NCBI GenBank assembly: GCA_946965045.2
Contig: OX337232.1
Span: forward strand, 1,054,001 to 1,118,000
Origin: Epithemia pelagica
Lineage: Eukaryota; Protista; Bacillariophyta
Length of the DNA stretch: 64,000 bases
Direction: 5' to 3'
The notes below the pieces were generated by a model. It was not told the DNA's origin and did not search any database. It saw nothing but the letters and a program-made list of their open reading frames with translations. The translations under genes and the position numbers were made by a program. Numbering within the stretch: the first letter of the stretch is position 1; each line of letters begins with the position of its first letter. Positions 27,540 to 44,600 of this stretch are shown piece after piece.

Positions 27540-29958
27540 TCACCCACCACCGCACCCACCACCACATCCGCCGCCGCCACATCCACCCCCGCCGCATCCT
27601 CCTCCACATCCTCCACCACCCCCGCAACCACCGCCGACATCTCCCGCCGTAACGGCACCACATCCACCGCTACAGCCTCCACCACCACCACAGGTTGCAC
27701 CAGCACCAAGATGATGGTTGTTCCCTCTACATGCTCCTCCACTAACCATGAAATATAAGAATGGATGAATAAATCATCATCAGCCACGACAAGACAAATA
27801 CACATTCGGGTTAGAGACGACGCAACCATGTCCCAGAAACCGTACGCAAGAACCAACAAGCACTATAGAAGGGTTCTCCAACCTGCTGTACGTACCATGT
27901 TCCTCCTCCACATCCGGCCGCCTCTTGTGCTTGAGCCAGAATCGCGTCTGTGCTCGAAGGCCCGTGGTGATGTGCCGTGCTGCTGGTAGCCGTGCCAAGT
28001 GGCACGAAATGGGTTGGAGCCCAATCCTTGTCTTGTTGTTGTTTGTTGGTGCTGGTGGAGGAGGACGAGGACGACGGATTCCACAAGGGAAACTGCCGTG
28101 CTCCTATCGCCCGACAGTGTTTCACCGTTGCTTCGGACAAGGGTACTCGGGGACCCGTGGCTGCTTGACGGGCTTGCACGTAGGCCAACAACTCCAAGGT
28201 TTTGGTCAATTCCGTTTCATAAGCCTCTTGTTGAGGATCTGCAGTCGTAGTACGGCGGGATGCATCCTCCGTCAAAGCCTCACTCGTACTGCAACACAAG
28301 GACGAAGTTCCACAGAGCGAAGCGAGAGCCATGTACGAATCGTACGTGCTATACTGTCGTTGGGCCTGTACCAAGAGTCGTCGCGACAAAATTTCCATGC
28401 CTTGCTGCGTATCCAAGGAATAATATCCGACCCCGCAACAAGCTGCCTTTCCAAAGACATGACCACGCTTTAAGGGATTGGCTAAATCGAATCGCAATCC
28501 CCAACCACCGGGCAATACGGGAGGAATAAAGGTGGAATCGGATGCCTTGGGTTCTTTCCACAGCATATCCTTGTCGTTGTCCTCGTCCTCCTCCTTGGCT
28601 TCTTTTGTTGTGTTGCTGTCCTGGTTGCCCCCCTCTGTTGCTAATCCCCTTGCATGAAATGGGGATCCCTGCTGATGCTCCTCTAGCAACAGTGCTGTAT
28701 TGTCGACGAGGCTCGTCGTCGTCGTGTGGTTGTCAAGAGTCCACGAGGGATCCCAAAATTCCACAGGTGCCGGTCCTCGATACATGGCCCCGGCCACGAT
28801 ATAGTCGTCTTGATTGGGATAGGCCTGTTTCCACAAACGGCAGGTTTCCCGAAAAGCCACATCCAACGAGGCACCGGGAGATCGATCGTCTCCCAAAGAA
28901 TCGTCATGAGACAACCAAGATCCGCGAATGGCTTGACAATCGTTCAAATATTGCGAGACGGACAGGGCAATGTGCGTATGCCAAATCCAATCAATTTGGT
29001 ACGTGGGTACTAAAATTGTAGAATGTTTGGTGTTGTTGTTGTTGTGCTGTTTGTCACTGTCTGGTTGTTCCACCAAGGCCAGGAAATGACCATATCGTTC
29101 AACGCCTTGACGCAAAAACGTTGGGTCGTCAAATTGTGGTTGCGAAATGTGCCACCACAAGGAAGCTTGACGACTGGCACTGGCCAACAGGTCCAATCCT
29201 TGGAGGAGTCGTTGTTGTTGTCGTTTGTGCTGGGAGTCTGCACCCGCAAAAGGTTCGTTTGGTGTGGTCGTTGTTGTTGTTGTTGTCAAATCCAGGAAAA
29301 AGGGCGTGTGGGGATAGCGTTGGTGCCACAAGTGTTGTGTATACTTGGTAGCAGTTGCTGCGTCCTGGTCGTGTTGTTGTTCTGATTGGTTTGCAGTAGC
29401 CGCCACTCCAAAGGGTACCGTGGCCTCCATGATTGTTCCATAGCGTTGTCGACAATAACTCCGATAGGAGAGAGGTGACAATCGATGGCAGTGCCACAAC
29501 CATGCACAGTCGGGTGGAGGCATCAGGGCAGACGACAAGTCTTGTGGTTGTTCGATGGTCTTTTTTTCGTCCTTTTCGTCGTGCAACGACGACGACGACG
29601 ACGACGACGACGAGTGGGCAGCCACCAAGGGAAGCCAATGGTCCAGGTAGCGATCCAGCATTCGTTGCAACAGTACTTGATCCGGGTCGTCCTCCTTATC
29701 CTGGCGTCGTTGCTCGTTGGGACTCGTCTCCTCGTCGTGCGGAGCAATCATCTGCCACAAGAAGAGTGTTGTGATCCCCGAAGCATGCATGTGTCGTAAA
29801 AAGGCTCGATGACATTGAGCTTGTTCCACCAACTGGGTCGCATTCAAGACGGTCAATGCCACGGCGGCATTTCGTTGACTGCGAGTCGTCGTCGTCGTAC
29901 TCCCTCGCCCGGAGGAGGGGTCGGTCCACCATTGATTGCTTTTAATCAATGGTTTCAT
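27540..29958 (-). CDS. Glycine-rich domain protein (GRDP/DUF1399-like) with Gly-Cys tail, 2 exons
   Basis: PPPDCAWLWHCHRLSPLSYRSYC; LVPTYQIDWIWHTH..HDDS. Intron 27742-27895 (GTACGT...TTAG) links AAGCGGGT-C to a (GGGC)n exon ending in TGA at 27540. Confidence 0.85.
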
Positions 29959-30283
29959 GATACTATGATACACCACTCCGAGTTTTCTGGGACCAAAGTG
30001 TCCAGAAAATGAAAATGTGACCGGCGAGAGTCCATATCTACTGCCGCGCGGACCCACTCTACAATGACGCCTGGAGTACCGTCGACCGACGCGCCCGGCC
30101 TGAGAGACAGGCGAGGTCGAAAATGTCGGTAATGATTGTCACAATTTAGAATTTAGTAGCCCCTCTAAAAAATGAAGGAAGCGTTCCTCTGATCTCTGAT
30201 ACTCCTATCGATAGCCCCAAACATAGCACTACTGAGGTAATCCAGAGCAGATCTATCAACGCGTCCTTTAAGAAAAGGCGGTT

Positions 30284-35430: not shown

Positions 35431-35628
35431 AGTCAGGAATTGACGGAAACTAATCTTTGTGTAAAGTGTGTCAAGAGAAATGTTGTAACAAACACATGTG
35501 AAATAGAGGCACTCCATGTACAGATCGTCCATCAACAACAAACACTTGCGCGAGATGTCGCATGGGATTGGTTTCCTGGGTTGATTTGCTTGCGATACCG
35601 GCTGTACCATTCAAGGTGGAACTGCAGA

Positions 35629-35900
35629 ACGAAGCAACAATGAAACACTATCACGCCATAGAAGCACGACAGTTTCCCTTGTGGAATCCTTCGTCCTTGT
35701 CGCCTCCTCCACCGCCAACAACAAACAAGACGAGGATGGGTCTCCAACCTACCACGTACCTTCGAGTGCAGACGCGATTCTGGTTCAAGCACAAGCGGCA
35801 ACAGGATGTGGAGGAGGAACATGGTATGTACAGCAGGTTGGAGAACCGTACTTTTAGAGATAGTTTTTGTTGGTTGTGTGCTTTTTCTGGGACATGGTTG
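35629..35900 (+). pseudogene. Inverted relic of the GRDP exon 1 end plus intron
   Basis: Matches the reverse complement of about 27820-28136 (cagacgcgattctgg, ggatgtggaggaggaacatggta.gtacagcaggttggagaacc, ttctgggacatggttgcgt) with a deletion and frameshift; includes intron sequence. Confidence 0.8.
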
Positions 35901-36125
35901 CGTGGTCTGAGTTCACCCCTTCTAGTCGCAAAGGTTTTGCTATTTTCGCTCAAGAACAATGGAAAAACTAGAAGATCACTCGTAGAATCAATAACTTGAT
36001 TTGAGTTACGACCTATATACAATACTCTTCTCCATCAGAACTAACAAGGAAGTGCCACTTCTAATACAACGACATGGTTTGTTGCGTGATCGTGCGAAAT
36101 TTCAGTAGCTTTCGAAATCATCTCT

Positions 36126-38731
36126 TCATACCATGGCCAGTTCGGGTTCTTTCACTTCTTCCTCTTTTTCTATTGCCACTGCCTCGTTTGTTCTTTCCTC
36201 TTGGGCTTGCACTCTCAGCGCTTTTCGAGAGGCCGAGAAGCGCTCCAGTTCTATGGGAGCATCTTCACCAGTGATGAGAGAAGCCATGCAATCCCCAATC
36301 AGCGGGCCAAACTTGAAGGCCCGACCACTTCCGCCCGAAAAGACTGCCACCTTGTCCGAAACCTTGTCCATGACAAAATACGAGTCCTCCGTCATGGTGT
36401 AGGGTGATGTGAAGGATTCGACGCGGTCTTCGACGTCCGGAAGGTGCTCGGCAACCCATCCGTCCATCAAATCAAGAATGGTTTGGGACCCCTGGTAGTC
36501 AAAGGTTTCCATGCCCTCCAAGTCTCCTCCCGACGGAAAGTCGACACCCACCTTGACGTACGTGTATTCATCCTCTTTGCCATTCTCGGTCTTGAGAGAT
36601 TCCGTGGCACTCGCGGGAAAGACGTAGTACAAACCCCCATCTTCCTTGCTTTGTCCCTTGCGAAAGTGAAAGGCCTGGGGAATCGAGGCGGCCACAGATT
36701 TCTTCACGCGGTAATGAGCCCATTGGATTTCCCACACCTTGAGGTTCAGCTTGGGGAGTCCGGCGGATTCCAGAACGCTGTTGGTCCACGGTCCAGCAGC
36801 AATGACTGCGTTATCGGCCTTGATTGTCAGGCCGTCTTCGGTGGTGGCGGTCACTCCGTCCTCGTGAACGTCCAGAGAAGTGATTTTCGTGTTTACATGG
36901 ACATCGCAAACGTCGCTAGCAATCTTCGCCATGGCGGCACAGGCCTTGGAGGCCTTGATGTGACCGGCATCGGCTTCGTAGACTCCGCTGTAGGGCATAC
37001 CCTCGCATCCCTTGAGAGAAGGATATTCCTTGGCAATCTCTTCTCCGGTTTCGAAAAAGGTGTGCTGCAGATTCAGATTCTCCATTGTCTTTTTGGCACC
37101 CAAAACAGACCCTTCAACGGTTTCTCCCGTGTCTTCTCCATAGAAGAGGAGACCATTCTTCTGTAGTAGGGTTTCACCGCTCTTGTCTTCGACGTCCTTC
37201 CACCTTTCGAGAGCGGTAGCTTGCATCTTGCTGAAGAATTCATCCGAATACATTTTGCGGTACATTCGAGAATCGCCATTGCTACTGGCCGTGGATGGCG
37301 CCAGGGATGCTCCTCTTTCGACCAAAATCGAGTTGACGTTCTTTTCCCCGAGGGCAAATGCCGTGCTGCATCCGGCCATTCCTCCCCCAACGATCAAAGT
37401 TTCGGTTTTCTTGGTATTTTCTTCGATCCATTCGGGAAAGGTCTTTCCGATGGGATCTCCCTTTCGAGAAGGAACCACATCAGCCGTGACGGATTCCATT
37501 TTATCGGCATTCTTTCCGGAGAGCTCGACCATATTCCGTGCTTTCTGTTGGCTCAATCCGCGGATCCATCCATACATGAGTGTGGGTTCGACGGTTTGGT
37601 AGAGGTCAATGTCGTACCACTCGACCGAATCGGCTAGAATGGCTCCGGCGCTCGAAATGCTCTCGGGCACGTGGAACACGCCGCGTTCGGCAAATGTAGA
37701 TTTTGCCTCGGTCGAGGCAAAGGGAGAATTCGTCGCTCCCGTGCAAAACTTGATTCCTTCGGGAAAGGTCGCAGCGACTTGTTCGGTAATGGCGAGGGAG
37801 TTGGCACACGGCACCAAGAAATCACACGGTGTGGAGGCCCAATCCTCAATGGGTGTGCATCCCGCAATGTTCGAAGCACCCTCACGAATGTCACAGGTCT
37901 GGACCTTTTTGGCACCCAAGCGAACCAGCTCCTTGGCGACGGTGGATCCAACCTTTCCACATCCCTGGACGGTAAATGTCAGGTCGGAAATCTTGACGCC
38001 ATCGTCACTGTGTGATTCGATCAATCCGAGAATACTTCCAATCACCGAGGCGGCAGTTGCAACGTTGGTATCGACAGCGGAATCTCTTCCTGCCAGAACA
38101 TATTGTTCATTGGTGGCTTCGGTAAGATAATCCATATCAATATCACAGGTATTCAAATCACATCCTGTGTAGACAGATCCAGAAAGAACTGTAGAAAGCG
38201 AGAGGGGGAAAATTGTTAAAAAAGGAATTCGGAAAATGGCAGGTAATTCGAGAAAATAAACATTGTATCCTTACCTTCGAGTGCTTTCGCAATATCTTCC
38301 ATCAGTGCTTTTCGTTTGATCTTGTCGAGAGGAATATCGGAGTTGGCCACCAATTTAGCTCCCGAGAAGCCAGTGCGAAACATGTCATGTTTGCGGGTCA
38401 TTCCTTCCGCCAATCGAACGGCATCATCAATGGCGTCCTTGTCCGATTGGTAATCGAGCAATCGAATTCCACCGTTGCCAGGACGTTCGTGGTCGAAATC
38501 CCCGTCCGTCGCAATGTACAATGTGATGCCCTCCTGCCGGACGGGTGCTTCAAAGACCTTGGCGGACCGAACCGACTCCACCAGGTGAAAGAATTCGTGG
38601 ACGGCCTGGTTAATGTCGGGAAACGACGCCGTTGGCGGCTTTCGGGCAAAGGAAGACAATCCATTCACCGAGGAGACGATTAGAACCCCGAAAACGATTG
38701 CCGAACGTATAGCAGAGCGAAACGAAACCAT
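36126..38731 (-). CDS. Fusion: Glu/Leu/Phe/Val dehydrogenase plus monomeric sarcosine-oxidase-like FAD enzyme, probable plastid presequence, 2 exons, 839 aa
   Basis: GNGGIR...RLAEGMTRKH..GFSGAKLV; intron 38189-38274 restores KALE-VLSGSVYTGCDLNT; VQGCGKVG; DFLVPCA; then IVGGGMAG, SSNGDSRMYRKMY, YTMTEDSYFVMD, GGSGRAFKFGPLIG. Confidence 0.85.
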
Positions 38732-39385
38732 GCTGTCCTTGTGGTTGTGGTTGTAGCTCTGGTTTGTCTTTTGCGGGAAGCTAACTTATGAAGAGACGCA
38801 TGGCAACGCATTGCTGAGTCCTCCTACGAGGGAACTGCCGCACATAATCTCGGATCTTTGGCATCTGTCCTGAAAAAAGTTGACTCAGATTTGTGAGCCC
38901 AACTCAACGCCAATTACGCATGTGTGGTATGTGGTGTCGCCTCGACATCCAATTTATTGGGTGGAGGAGGTCTCTCCGTAGTTCGTTTCAATCCTTTCGA
39001 GGAGGGTCGCCCGGCGTGAAAGAAGGAATAATATGCCCTCCTTGACATATGCCCTTTTCGATAGCTTAGGACGAGAATAGCGCATGCCATTGAAAACATA
39101 TGCCTGTAGAGTCATCCTCCCCATCGCGCCGGGGGACCGTCCAAAAGGAATACAATGGAGAGGACCGACCACGGCCTGTCACTCTCTCTGACGCACAAAC
39201 TATTACTCAGCGACAATAAGAATATTTGGTTCGAACGTCATTTGAAAGTCTAACACGACAACCAATGACTTTTTAGATCCAAACCTGTTTTAGTGAAAAT
39301 GTGAAGTGGGTTTGTTTCATGTGAAAGTATGAGTGGTTCTCAAAGTTCCAAAATATCAAACAATAGCTCATTCGACACTTGAATC

Positions 39386-40744
39386 ATGACAACCATAATG
39401 ACGATGAAGCCCCGCATGAAACGAATTATCAGTGCCTCGATTGCTACCATCTGCAGCACCTCTCTGAATGGGGCCACGGCGGCGTTTGCGTCGAACGTCC
39501 CGACCCCCATGGAACACGTCCACACCCCCGTCGGAACAGACGGCGAGGGTGAGTACACGGCCGCGACCAAGGGTTGTTTTGATGTGATTGAGGCAGCGAG
39601 TCCGTTAATCTTGCAACAAGTTTGTCGGCAACCGATTCGTGAAGGTCAGGCCTTTCACGTGGCGGATTATGGAACCGCCGATGCGGGGACTTCGTTGGGG
39701 TTGCTTTCCAAGGTCGTCCGTACCGTACGAGAACGAACGAATGCCGAGGAAAAAGAAGTCGTCATTCACTACGAGGACCAGCTCAACAACGAGTGGAAGA
39801 GTGTCTTTAATCATGCCCTCGGATACAAAAAAGTGACAGATGCCTATAACACGGAAATCGATACGCCGTATAATCTTGGAGGGGTATTTGTCGAAGCCAA
39901 TGGGGTCGGCTTCCACAATCAGTGTTATGCTACTGGATCGATCGATTTGGGTGTGAGTTTCACCGCCATGCACTGGTTGAGCTCATCGCCCTCGTCTCTC
40001 AAAGGATCTTTGAAATATATGCATGCGGCGAGATGCCCCGACGGGCCACCCGAGGGCGAAAAATTGCAAGCCGCACAAGACTGGTACAAGATCCTCCAGG
40101 CTCGATCCAAGGAACTCACCAAGGGCGGACGATTTGTGTGTGTCAACTTTTGCGTTTCCAAAGAAGGATATTTCTTGGGACAAACCGATGTTGGATCGAG
40201 CATGTGGGATTCGTTCCAATCGTCGTGGGACAAGCTCGCGGCCGATGGAATCATTGACGACCAAGAACAATCGGGGGTCTCCTTCCCCAACTACTATCGC
40301 ACCACAGAAGAATTCCTGGCCGGAATTGAACAATGTCCCGACTTGAAGTTGATCACCGCCGAAGAGAAAATTGTTCGGTGCCCGTACCGCGAACAGTTTG
40401 TCGCCGGTAAAACCGACATGAGTCCCCGGGAATACGCCAGGTCCTTTGTACCAGTAAGTCAAATTGCGTCTCCACGCACTTTTATTGTGTGTTGACAGTT
40501 TTTTTTTCCAAAATACAAGAACATCTCACACTCTGAATGATTTTCTTGCCAATCCAATAATTAGACAACCCGAACATGGTCGCATTCGACATTCAAGGCG
40601 GCACTGCGAGACGATAGAACCAATGACGAGAAAGAGAAGATTCTAGAGAAATTCTGGTCCAATTATGAAGACTTGGTAGCTCAATCACCGGAAACTCATG
40701 GCATGGACTATGTTCATTCGTACTTGGTCATTGAAAAGATGTAA
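39386..40744 (+). CDS. SABATH (Methyltransf_7) SAM-dependent methyltransferase, probable plastid presequence, 2 exons
   Basis: FHVADYGTADAGTS; HYEDQLNNEW; S..AMHWLS; DWYKILQARSKELTKGGRF; PNYYRT. Intron 40454-40564; exon 2 TTRTWS...HGMDYVHSYLVIEKM*. Confidence 0.85.
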
Positions 40745-41100
40745 TTCATGAACGACCGCGGTGTACCAATTGGTTGTTCGTGTCCTACGAGTTCTTATAT
40801 CTCTGCGCTTTGCTGCCAACGTGCGAAATTGTTTGTACTATGGAGCAGAAAAATACAGTAGGGTACTAGAATGATAGTCATCAGAACCATTGAATAAAAT
40901 ATCTTTTTGAATATCATTTCCCTCTCCCGCGGGTTGATCCGAACGAGAACAGGAGCAACATGCTCGAGCGCAAAAGCCGGAGAAAAATGACGATGATGAA
41001 CACGAACGCCTTCAAGGCGTTTTGCACCTCCATAATAGGAGTTGCACCTAGCGCAACCGATTGGAAGACTCTCCTGGTACCTCCCAACGGGGATCCAAAA

Positions 41101-41276
<176 letters not shown>

Positions 41277-41635: not shown

Positions 41636-44600
41636 ATGTCGAACAGCAAAGAGAAGGAGGATGAGGCAAGCAGCCCCTCGTCCTTGCCATCCTCTTCTTT
41701 GTCTCCGTGGATCAAGACGAGTGATTTGTTGGTGGACATTTTGATTGAAGAAGGTGTCCAATGGGTCTTTGGCATTCCGGGAGAAGAAAATTTGGATTTC
41801 ACCGAAAGTTTGCGGTTGCGTCAAGATTCGATTCAACTCGTCTTGACGCGTCACGAACAAGCCGCGGGATTCATGGCCGCCACCATTGGTCGGTTGACGG
41901 GGCAACCGGGTGTGGCCTTGTCCACCTTGGGACCGGGGGCAACCAATTTTACCACGAGTGCAGCCTTTGCGCAGCTGGGGGGCTTTCCCTCCGTCTTTGT
42001 GACGGGTCAAAAACCCATTAAAGATTCCAAACAGGCCAATTTTCAAATTATCAATGTGGTGGAAATGATGAAACCCATCACCAAATATTCCCATTCGGTG
42101 GCGTCGGGACACATGTTGGCCTCCACGGTCCGACGAGCCTTTTCGACGGCCGTGACGGAAAAGCCAGGACCTGTGCACTTTGAATTGGCCGAAGATGTGG
42201 CCAGTGAACGTACGAAACGATTAATTTTTGACAAACAGACACCGCGTCGTCCTATTGCCGAACCCAAGGCCATTGCAGCCGCCGTGTCTCTCTTGAAAGA
42301 AGCACAGCGTCCCATTGTCTTGATGGGTGCCGCCGCCAATCGACAACGGGCCATTCGAGCCTTGCGCAATTTTGTGCAAGAAACGGGCATGTATTGGGCC
42401 TGCACGCAAATGGGCAAGGGTGTTTTGGATGAACGTCACGAACAGTTTTTGGGATGTTGTGCCTTGAGTGACAAGGATTTTTGTCATGGAGCCATGGACT
42501 ACAGCGATGTTATTATCCTGATTGGTCATGATGAAAGCGAAAAGCCACCCCTCTTTATGCGGCCTGGACAACGTCGTAAGGTGATTCATTTGGCCTTTAC
42601 ACCGGCCACAGTCGACAATGTCTATTCTCCCACCCTTCAAGTCATTGGTGATGTCGCCAATGCTGTCTGGCAAATTCATCAACAACTAACTGAACAAGGA
42701 ATTTCCTGGAAGAACAAGCAACCAGTCTTTCAACGCTACAAGGAGCTGGCCGATGCCAAATTGCAACAAGGCTTGGACGACGATTCCTTTCCACTCAATA
42801 TTACTCGGGTTTGTGCCGATTTGCGTCGTGTCTTGCCGGAAGATGGTATTTTGTCCTTGGACAATGGTTTGTACAAGGTTATTTTGGCTCGCCTCTTTCA
42901 AGCCTATCAACCCAATACCGTGTTGCTGGACAATGCCTTGGCCACCATGGGCGCTGGAATTCCCAATGCCATTGCCTGTAAATTTCTCTATCCCGACCGC
43001 AAAGTGATTTCCATTAGTGGCGATGGCGGAGCCCAAATGAATTTGCCGGTATGTACTTTCTGTTTTATTGCTTGCGTGTAGACTCTTGCAGTGGATTTCG
43101 GGCTAACCTTTTGGTTCTTTTCACATTTTGGTGTCCTCATCGTTGTCTCCCTTTTCTCGGTTTACCTACTGCACTTTTTTTATTCTATTTCTGCTTTACA
43201 ACTCAGGAACTTGCCACCTGCATCCAATACAATCTCAATGTGGTTCATGTTATTCTAAACGACAATGCCTTTGGAATGATCAAATGGAAGCAGGCGGGAG
43301 CTGGTTTTGAAAATTGGGGACTGGATTTGCAAAATCCCGACTTGGTGGCCTTGGCTGAATCCTATGGATGCAAGGGATACCGTGTCACCAAAGCGGACGA
43401 ATTGGTCCCTCTCTTGACGCAGTGTTTGAACGAACCAGGAACCCATGTCGTGGAAGTTCCCTTTTCCTACCAATGGGTGTCGCAGCACTTGGAAACGATT
43501 CCAGCACAAGTCCAGGAATTGCATCAGATTATTGCCCAAGAATTTGGACTCTTGCATAAGGAAGACTGTTTTCATGGCAGTACCAGTACTGTTTCAGATA
43601 CCAAAGAGTCGGAAGATAAAGGCGACAAGCAGGCCATGGAGGCAGTGTCTGTGACGGCGCCGAAGGTCACAGCAACTCCCTCCATGACTAAACCTGACGT
43701 GCCAACAGCACCGGTACCACCAGCTTCGGTACCCGCCCCAGTCGCACCTCCAAAGCAGTCTCGTGTGGCGGGACAAGCCGATTATTCGGTTCAACCCGGC
43801 AGTACCCTTCCATTCTATCTCGCGGTACGTACTAAACCCAAAACCAAAATGACAGGAAACTTTGGCATTTCATCTAAACAAGCGCGACTGTTGTTGGTTT
43901 TGATGATGCACAGGGCCAACCAGTTACACCCAACGGCGATCTTCCAGTCGTAAACAAATATACGTTGCAAGAGTTTTGCAAAGTCGCATTGGCCGACGAA
44001 GGTCATGTCAATCAGGCCACGGAAATTGCTGCAACCGTAGGAGCCCACAAGATGCGTGCCTTGCCCGCCTATGTGCGACAACAAATTTTGCAAAATGTGG
44101 CCAATGAGGCGACCAAACGTCGGGATGAATTTGGATATTACTTGGCCATTGAAGCAGGAAAACCCATTCAGGATGCTCGTGGCGAAGCCGATCGGCTCAT
44201 TCAAACCTTTCAACTCGCTGCCGAAGAAGCGACGCGTATTTATGGAGAGTATGCTGATCTTGCCATTGCCCCTCGAGCCAAGGGATATACATCTGTGACG
44301 AAGCGAGTGCCCATTGGACCCGTCAGCTTGGTATGTTCGTTTCTTGGTCTTTCCTATGACGCTTATTGGTTTGACGTAGAATGAGTGTGGTCCTTCTCAC
44401 GACTTGCCTATGCTTGTTTTAGATTGCACCATTCAACTTCCCTCTCAACTTGGCGGCACACAAAGTTGCTCCAGCCATTGCTGCAGGTGAGTTCGATACA
44501 GCATGTCCGAATGGCTAGAGACGAACTCTTTTTCTCTCAATAACTCTTGTTTGTTTTGTTTGAAAAGGATGTCCATTTGTCCTCAAGCCAGCTTCCAACA

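Follow-up and report, generated by a model that had tools for sequence, protein, structure and literature searches.

A dehydrogenase–oxidase fusion and its methyltransferase neighbour in the diatom Epithemia pelagica: a candidate route from lysine to homarine

A stretch of 64,000 nucleotides from the diatom Epithemia pelagica (contig OX337232.1, positions 1,054,001 to 1,118,000; "the window" below means this whole stretch) carries a gene whose single product joins an amino-acid dehydrogenase of the ELFV type to a flavoprotein oxidase of the MSOX family. Head to head with it lies a gene for a methyltransferase of the SABATH type, dependent on S-adenosylmethionine (SAM). The architecture of the fusion, its conserved catalytic residues, the linkage and fusions of the three genes and their taxonomic distribution are observations of this study. 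Our best reading, to which we give a probability of roughly 0.55, is that these enzymes would convert L-lysine through delta1-piperideine-2-carboxylate (P2C) and picolinate into N-methylpicolinate, the solute homarine. The module can be likened to the NikC/NikD picolinate route of nikkomycin biosynthesis in Streptomyces, with a dehydrogenase placed at its start and methylation by a SABATH enzyme added.

Two enzymes in one polypeptide

The fusion gene is read from the minus strand and has two exons, with the following parts (positions are those of the window):

38731..38216 and 38156..36126, minus strand: the two open reading frames that the splice joins
38275..38731, minus strand: exon 1, encoding the signal peptide and the N-terminal substrate domain of the ELFV-type dehydrogenase (translation, alignments)
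about 38651-38731, minus strand: signal peptide, residues 1 to about 24/27 (translation)
38189..38274, minus strand: intron of 86 nt, GTAAGG...CTACAG (GT-AG), at a point where relatives' proteins are contiguous
36126..38188, minus strand: exon 2, a single uninterrupted exon of 2063 nt
37587..38188, minus strand: first part of exon 2, with catalytic Asp163 and the Rossmann domain binding nicotinamide adenine dinucleotide (NAD) (PF00208, PheDH alignment, family conservation)
37413..37586, minus strand: helical linker joining both enzymes (alignment, predicted helices)
36207..37412, minus strand: NikD-like oxidase domain of the MSOX family, binding flavin adenine dinucleotide (FAD) (PF01266, NikD alignment, Foldseek)
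36126..36206, minus strand: acidic C-terminal tail (translation; low confidence in a relative's model) and stop codon (36126-36128)

Joined by a local script, the exons give a coding sequence of 2520 nt for 839 residues with one stop codon, at the end; exon 1 contributes 152 codons and one nucleotide. This concatenation served the frame check and the residue numbering alone. Searches used each exon separately, and the full-length stand-in was P0006, a protein from an MMETSP transcript that is 88% identical over exon 2.

A first-pass annotation, made from the letters of the sequence, had described one spliced reading frame with both domains, and this description holds. Exon 2 alone, in one open frame, matches ELFV_dehydrog PF00208 with 54.5 bits (cut-off 23.4) and DAO PF01266 with 123.5 bits (cut-off 27.9; 1.9e-35). 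Because this exon by itself contains part of the dehydrogenase and the entire oxidase, the fusion is independent of the splice. The junction, ...KALE/V/LSGSVYTGCD, matches the relatives P0006 and P0010 with contiguous numbering from residue 151 to 152, and the alignment with LeuDH agrees with it, exon 1 ending at about LeuDH residue 105 and exon 2 starting at 107-109.

An artefact of the gene model, with two separate genes or a pseudogene behind it, is scarcely credible. The intron was deduced from DNA, which speaks for such an error; intron and intergenic DNA are both present in DNA-type contigs of the same organism (four runs), and no intron-spanning joints are reported in the same-organism contigs that contain the stretch, all of them of the DNA type. 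Against an artefact stand the uninterrupted exon 2, the conservation of the catalytic residues in a 67-protein alignment and the complete transcript-derived MMETSP proteins of close relatives (81-88% identity), which share both the fused architecture and the junction. A dehydrogenase–oxidase fusion in a single polypeptide is confirmed.

An AlphaFold2 model of P0006, built with 67 relatives, reached a mean predicted local distance difference test score (pLDDT) of 89.7 and a predicted template-modelling score of 0.87, likewise unexpected for an artefact. By this model both domains are well folded and hold a defined orientation to each other; predicted linker helices (residues 353-408) with pLDDT above 90 connect them. 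The linker ends in ...GDPIGKTFPEW, also the terminal motif of the separate Synechococcus dehydrogenase.

Compared with the window, DNA contigs from three runs of a single study show about 50 single-base differences within 36000-40800. Variant sites inside coding regions, including 36411, 36420, 37914 and 37971, are each seen in some runs only and break no frame in the fusion or the methyltransferase gene; they look like allelic or strain variation.

The oxidase domain and its resemblance to NikD

The MSOX-family flavoprotein spans residues 419 to about 813. It combines the DAO fold, a GxGxxG motif for FAD (VGGGMAG, 419-425, with GGGMAG at 420-425) and a carboxylate clamp of conserved Arg and Lys (R460, R463, K778); the other key residues are E511, Y674, K698, D702, S747 and R775. 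Fold, FAD motif, clamp and the equivalent of MSOX Lys265 are shared with MSOX, N-methyltryptophan oxidase and pipecolate oxidase. MSOX-family enzymes act on secondary amines or cyclic imino acids.

Within this family the fusion's oxidase is nearest to NikD, both in sequence (3.7e-29, versus about 1e-20 for MSOX) and in fold. Foldseek ranked NikD first (E 4.5e-33, TM 0.89), ahead of MSOX and MTOX; the N-terminal half matched PheDH and LeuDH. Similarity to MSOX and NikD lies at TM 0.87-0.90. The best NCBIfam model, N-methyl-L-tryptophan oxidase NF008425, scored 149.6 against a cut-off of 257, and the sarcosine oxidase equivalog TIGR01377 scored 142.3 against 479.65.

The active site follows NikD. 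Alignments to PDB structures place E511, D702 and Y674 at NikD Glu101, Asp276 and Tyr258, which we take from the NikD literature to be catalytic. Algal and bacterial members alike conserve these three, together with the counterparts of NikD Arg50/Arg53 and Lys358. MSOX differs at two of the three positions: it has no Glu at the place of Glu101 (E511 here), and our own alignment sets its His269 at the place of Asp276 (motifs KIGYH and KVGVD).

The first-pass annotation had also remarked on the missing cysteine for covalent FAD and on GRAFK in place of GHGFK, and both remarks are borne out. Ser747, in TSPYT, aligns with the flavinylated cysteine of MSOX and NikD, and the residue is Ser in Synechococcus as well; the Cys for 8-alpha-S-cysteinyl FAD (Cys315 in MSOX, Cys321 in NikD) is absent. 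The counterparts of GRAFK are GHGFK in MSOX and GWAFK in NikD. The differences from NikD extend to Arg272, which is Lys here, as MSOX Lys265, to Trp355, and to an overall identity of only about 25%.

The dehydrogenase domain

The ELFV-type dehydrogenase covers residues from about 60 to 355. Its top PDB relative is the Rhodococcus PheDH 1C1D (3e-22), then come leucine dehydrogenases, and exon 1 aligns with LeuDH residues 21-94 (E=2.9e-6). No PF02812 (N-domain) match was obtained on exon 1 of the window; PF02812 is recorded for many relatives. The catalytic-looking motifs reported at first pass are confirmed by alignment: MTRK114H and SGAK126L fall on the carboxylate-binding and catalytic lysines of the phenylalanine and leucine dehydrogenases. 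K114, K126 and the catalytic Asp163 (in YTGC162D163) align with their PheDH/LeuDH equivalents and are invariant in the 67 relatives. The Rossmann motif is GCGKVG (228-233), one of the two that had been noticed. The Phe, Leu and Trp (ScyB) dehydrogenases have the two lysines, the catalytic Asp and this Rossmann motif in common with the domain, and Asp252, at the end of beta-2, suggests a preference for NAD over NADP.

The pocket for the substrate side chain is different. Asn86 (in PGNGG), His115 and Cys162 sit where PheDH and LeuDH have Ala/Leu, Met and Pro/Glu, and they are nearly invariant across algal and bacterial members and invariant in the 67-protein algal alignment. Not retained is the hydrophobic pocket of the leucine and phenylalanine dehydrogenases, which we take to comprise Leu40/Ala113/Val291/Val294 in LeuDH and the Ala38/Met67/Pro117 region in PheDH. 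Judged from the alignments, the replaced residues would fit a polar side chain, of which lysine would be one case and is not proven thereby. To our knowledge, no sequence has been assigned to lysine 2-dehydrogenase (EC 1.4.1.15), and a dehydrogenase acting on lysine would be a new specificity.

Presequence and targeting

Residues 1 to about 27 form a hydrophobic signal peptide, followed by ...NGLSS/FARKPP. Relatives of the fusion carry classic xA/F motifs, and the neighbouring methyltransferase begins with an ASAFAP-like motif, TAA/FASNVP. Where the first-pass annotation had asserted a plastid presequence, the signal peptide itself stands, and the plastid as destination is plausible on these N-terminal motifs.

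A methyltransferase beside the fusion

On the other side of a short divergent region lies the partner gene:

39386..40744, plus strand: SAM-dependent methyltransferase of the SABATH type (Methyltransf_7), 415 aa (PF03492; tblastn gene model)
39386-40453 and 40565-40744, plus strand: its exons, separated by an intron of 111 nt at 40454-40564
38732..39385, no strand: divergent intergenic region of 654 bp, presumed to be the bidirectional promoter of the fusion and methyltransferase genes

With 88.2 bits against a cut-off of 29.8 (7.5e-25), the product belongs to PF03492, and its MHWLSS aligns with the SABATH motif xHWLS for carboxylate binding, Trp included. Its PDB relatives are FAMT, IAMT and DXMT, the best match being a mycobacterial fatty-acid O-methyltransferase (4e-12).

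The association of the two genes is widespread and nearly constant. The head-to-head layout recurs in Pseudo-nitzschia multistriata, Cyclotella cryptica, Cylindrotheca closterium and Dunaliella salina. In Pycnococcus the two genes stand in tandem, and they are adjacent too in several contigs of uncultured eukaryotes, diatoms among them. The methyltransferase becomes a third, C-terminal domain in proteins of 1083-1185 aa, one belonging to Nephroselmis pyriformis. When the oxidase domain was used in an exhaustive HMMER search, oxidase–methyltransferase fusions that have no dehydrogenase were recovered too, for instance in Porphyridium purpureum.

A gene for a thiamine diphosphate (ThDP)-decarboxylase::aldehyde dehydrogenase (ALDH) at 41636-45640 was considered as a third cluster member and rejected. 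It does not lie beside the two genes in P. multistriata, Cyclotella, Cylindrotheca, Dunaliella or Pycnococcus, and its proximity in the window looks coincidental. The interval between it and the methyltransferase contains a long (GT/CA)n microsatellite at about 41095-41275, read as CVCV.../HTHT... open reading frames. Just downstream of the 3' end of the fusion, at about 35600-35860 (plus strand), lies a partial copy, in opposite orientation, of the open reading frame 27811-30057 (minus strand); the copied part is its C-terminal coding part (...ARQFPLWNPSS...GCGGGTWYVQQVGEP...).

Distribution among algae

In diatoms the two-domain protein occurs in Pseudo-nitzschia (85% identity), Corethron, Chaetoceros, Cyclotella cryptica, C. 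atomus, Cylindrotheca, Nitzschia, Thalassiosira antarctica, Conticribra (Thalassiosira) weissflogii and Rhizosolenia. In Fragilariopsis, T. punctigera and the bolidophyte Triparma it was the partner methyltransferase that was observed. Judged by these relatives, the organism is pennate and stands near Pseudo-nitzschia. At about 40% identity the fusion is found in green algae (Dunaliella, a pedinophyte and Pycnococcus). The nearest ESM-Atlas cluster with both domains (score 0.98) bears mostly Haptophyta labels. The fusion is probably present in haptophytes, and one of them, Emiliania huxleyi, makes homarine. Diatom fusions fall into two clades that have diverged to about 50% identity: a Nitzschia inconspicua/Chaetoceros type (P0061-P0066) and a Pseudo-nitzschia/Cyclotella type (P0005-P0046).

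The architecture is not rare and is spread over diatoms, green and red algae: hundreds of public copies exist, unannotated or generically annotated. The first-pass annotation knew of no characterised enzyme built in this way, and none appears to exist.

The unfused module in bacteria

Stand-alone bacterial oxidases with 36-37% identity, returned by the HMMER search with the oxidase domain, lie in an operon Methyltransf_7 - ELFV - DAO - BCCT with overlapping reading frames. Bacterial loci were also collected by scanning one genome of each prokaryotic species with a profile and mapping the best 80 of 297 matches by tblastn. Among these 80 loci the complete four-gene operon was found in at least about 40 species of marine Synechococcus/Parasynechococcus, four Myxococcota and one Roseivirgaceae bacterium. 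The three enzymes without the BCCT transporter occur in Prochlorococcus of the high-nutrient, low-chlorophyll (HNLC) type (L051, L053, L054), in Scytonema, Okeania and other cyanobacteria, and in Entotheonella. A single bacterium, L095, has an operon of the form ELFV-[DAO-methyltransferase fusion]-BCCT. DAO relatives at or below 34% identity, mostly actinobacterial, have none of the module partners. Synechococcus WH8102 and WH7803 are not among the best 80 of 297 matches, and an Rfam scan of 12 bacterial operon loci gave no relevant riboswitch (lysine, SAM or other).

The unusual signature of the fusion's dehydrogenase (P-x-N-G-G, K-H, T-G-C-D) recurs in the bacterial dehydrogenases, and the residues that its oxidase has in common with the bacterial ones are R..R, E, Y, K-x-G-x-D, S-P-Y and F-K-F. 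When the oxidase domain was placed in a maximum-likelihood tree, every sequence associated with the module fell into a single clade (SH-aLRT 86), apart from the actinobacterial relatives without partners, and the eukaryotic oxidases formed one clade within the tree (support 99). Two bacterial sequences, from a Legionellaceae metagenome-assembled genome (L070) and from the uncultured bacterium L095/P0259, nest inside this otherwise eukaryotic clade, an arrangement suggesting that bacteria acquired them from an algal or protist host.

The operon has been catalogued before. Doré et al. (2023) list it as leuDH-soxA-CK_00001744, describe it as "present in most Synechococcus genomes" and as occurring in HNLC Prochlorococcus, and read it as nitrogen scavenging, with ammonium released from branched-chain amino acids (PMC10119275). 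Their tables place the operon in clade III strains related to WH8102, in CC9311, CC9605 and BL107, and in Prochlorococcus MIT9515; they record it as absent from MED4 and AS9601 (PMC10119275). MIT9515 (present) versus MED4 and AS9601 (absent) offers a natural experiment on the product.

The E. pelagica pair corresponds to this module: the same three families are adjacent, dehydrogenase and oxidase are orthologous, and signature residues and clade are shared. In contrast to the algal fusion, the bacterial genes are separate members of an operon, usually with BCCT. That study presents the operon as a distribution pattern only and draws no link to homarine or to an algal fusion (PMC10119275). The same study describes a layout of comparable logic, Synechococcus gbmt1-gbmt2-proVWX, in which the genes for glycine-betaine synthesis adjoin the transporter of the same solute (PMC10119275); its enzymes are unrelated and its transporter is of another type.

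From lysine to homarine

Several features bear on the reaction carried out by the module. Its fusions set the order dehydrogenase, oxidase, methyltransferase. Because the last of these depends on SAM, the module should serve synthesis rather than breakdown. BCCT transporters carry betaines, and the BCCT partner in bacteria points to a betaine-like zwitterion as product. Homarine is proposed because the sequence lysine, P2C, picolinate, N-methylpicolinate needs exactly these three activities. Substrate, product and localisation are those that we infer from homology and genomic context.

The NAD-dependent ELFV domain would oxidatively deaminate the alpha-amino group of L-lysine, and the resulting 6-amino-2-oxohexanoate would cyclise spontaneously to P2C. 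The fused NikD-like oxidase, holding its FAD non-covalently, would then turn P2C into picolinate by two O2-dependent two-electron oxidations, and the head-to-head SABATH enzyme would N-methylate picolinate to homarine. Amino-acid dehydrogenase equilibria favour amination. Fusion in algae, and translational coupling in bacteria, would find their explanation here, since the irreversible O2-dependent oxidase would drive such a dehydrogenase by removing its product and so pull the unfavourable deamination forward. In diatoms all three activities would probably reside in the plastid, the site of lysine synthesis; in bacteria the BCCT transporter would probably serve re-uptake or exchange of the solute.

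Precedents exist for the individual steps. NikC and NikD convert lysine via P2C to picolinate, the P2C arising by alpha-deamination and the proposed chemistry continuing with a four-electron aromatisation (PMC4021061). The algal module differs in having a fused NAD-dependent ELFV dehydrogenase in place of NikC, an aminotransferase dependent on pyridoxal phosphate. The fate of picolinate differs as well: it is activated with coenzyme A for the antibiotic in one case and would be methylated to an osmolyte in the other. N-methylation of a pyridine carboxylate by a SABATH enzyme is known from the coffee trigonelline synthases CTgS1/2, which belong to PF03492 like the partner (PMC8877179). They are distant relatives of it, and their substrate is nicotinate, which would be picolinate here.

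The distribution of the metabolite adds to the case. Homarine is reported to be produced by diatoms and marine Synechococcus at millimolar levels (PMC8269262, correction PMC10134881; PMC13236597). It was not found in the tested cultures of Prochlorococcus, dinoflagellates and prasinophytes (Micromonas, Ostreococcus) (PMC8269262, PMC10134881, PMC13236597). Heal et al. tested the Prochlorococcus strains MED4 and AS9601 and, among cyanobacteria, found homarine in Synechococcus only. In axenic T. weissflogii homarine is a major, salinity-responsive osmolyte (PMC7024275), which counts for homarine because the same species has the fusion.

Genetic information on homarine synthesis was stated in 2021 to be lacking (PMC8269247, PMC8269262), and the literature assumes, by analogy with shrimp, an origin from quinolinate or tryptophan. 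A phrase search of the literature to October-November 2026 returned no report of homarine biosynthetic genes. A bacterial operon for homarine catabolism was published in 2026, with no mention of biosynthetic genes (PMC13236597).

Evidence that weighs against homarine from lysine

Several observations do not fit easily. In the dehydrogenase no acidic residue is evident that could bind the epsilon-ammonium group of lysine. In the oxidase, Trp355 of NikD, which stacks over the flavin or the ligand, is replaced by Arg775 in algae and by Gln in Synechococcus, and the covalent Cys of NikD by Ser. The methyltransferase retains the carboxylate-binding Trp of the SABATH motif HW(L)S, and O-methylation instead of N-methylation is possible on that ground. 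Prasinophytes are said to be without homarine (PMC13236597, for Micromonas and Ostreococcus only), and Pycnococcus and Nephroselmis carry the genes. The weightiest difficulty concerns Thalassiosira pseudonana, a well-documented homarine producer (PMC12817926, PMC3476827). Word-based searches, which recovered other Thalassiosirales at 57-80% identity, returned no orthologue of either gene in T. pseudonana, T. oceanica or Phaeodactylum tricornutum. A single gap in assembly or annotation could hide both genes in T. pseudonana because they are adjacent; a real absence would require a second route to homarine.

Alternative functions

The same enzyme logic might lead to another product, for example if ornithine gave delta1-pyrroline-2-carboxylate, or if P2C were oxidised only once and then methylated. 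O- or N-methylation would then yield methyl picolinate, a compound of the N-methylpyrrole-2-carboxylate type or an undescribed betaine. We consider this rather doubtful, with these points in its favour: the linkage fixes the order of the enzymes and a methylated end product, not its identity; the retained SABATH Trp and the T. pseudonana case can be read in the same way; and the pocket residues are unlike those of every characterised ELFV enzyme and, at Trp355, unlike NikD. What tells against it is that homarine is known to be abundant in Synechococcus as well as in diatoms (PMC8269262), and no metabolite of this kind is, that a BCCT partner suits a zwitterionic betaine better than an ester, and that the NikD-specific acids of the four-electron aromatisation are conserved. 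A catabolic role in nitrogen scavenging is unlikely. Here BCCT would import N-methyl or branched-chain amino acids, a SoxA-like oxidase would demethylate them and a "leucine dehydrogenase" would release ammonium; demethylation followed by deamination was also a role proposed at first pass. The database names leuDH and soxA, the MSOX family of the oxidase with N-methyl-L-tryptophan oxidase as its best NCBIfam model, and the fact that BCCT transporters are importers agree with it, as does the association of the Prochlorococcus cluster (eCAG) with HNLC, amino-acid-using populations (PMC10119275). However, an irreversible SAM-dependent methyltransferase is useless for demethylation, yet it is the tightest partner and, in several lineages, forms one protein with the oxidase. 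The NCBIfam scores lie far under the equivalog cut-offs, the hydrophobic pocket residues of the Leu and Phe dehydrogenases are replaced, MSOX His269 is an Asp as in NikD, and the algal proteins look plastid-targeted with no transporter attached.

The other role suggested at first pass, inversion of D- to L-amino acids (or the reverse) through a 2-oxo acid formed by the oxidase and re-aminated by the dehydrogenase, is highly improbable. A DAO-fold oxidase and a reversible amino-acid dehydrogenase could do so in principle, but MSOX-family enzymes oxidise secondary amines and not primary D-amino acids, and the active site has the Arg/Lys clamp and the NikD acids instead of the residues of D-amino-acid oxidase. 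Both first-pass roles leave the co-inheritance of the methyltransferase, the BCCT transporter of the bacterial operons and the NikD-type active-site acids unexplained, and we set them aside in favour of homarine synthesis. Two further routes were dropped, as neither offers a step for an MSOX-family amine oxidase: one of the dimethylsulfoniopropionate type, and one to the methyl ester of the auxin indole-3-acetic acid (Trp, indole-pyruvate, indole-3-acetic acid, methyl ester).

Significance

The superfamily of each domain, the unfused operon as a catalogued entity and the fused proteins, unstudied in public proteomes, are already known. What appears to be new is the recognition that algal fusion, neighbouring methyltransferase and cyanobacterial operon form one module, together with the Rosetta-stone fusions, the BCCT link and a specific and testable assignment to homarine from lysine. 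We see about an even chance that a broader claim is true as a whole: that gene pair and operon are the missing homarine pathway, starting from lysine and including the first sequence-assigned L-lysine 2-dehydrogenase, and that the module entered algae once and stayed linked or fused in the nuclear genomes of diatoms, green and red algae.

Homarine ranks among the most abundant nitrogenous osmolytes and infochemicals in marine plankton. As a pool of labile carbon and nitrogen it is notable in the surface ocean, and it serves as a signal to marine animals. If the proposal is true, a marker for its synthesis would let metagenomes and metatranscriptomes show which organisms make homarine, where and when, and the operon of HNLC picocyanobacteria, at present taken to serve nitrogen scavenging, would have to be re-interpreted. 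Should the product prove to be different, the module would still represent a widespread three-enzyme route to a methylated solute, with the order of its reactions recorded in gene fusions.

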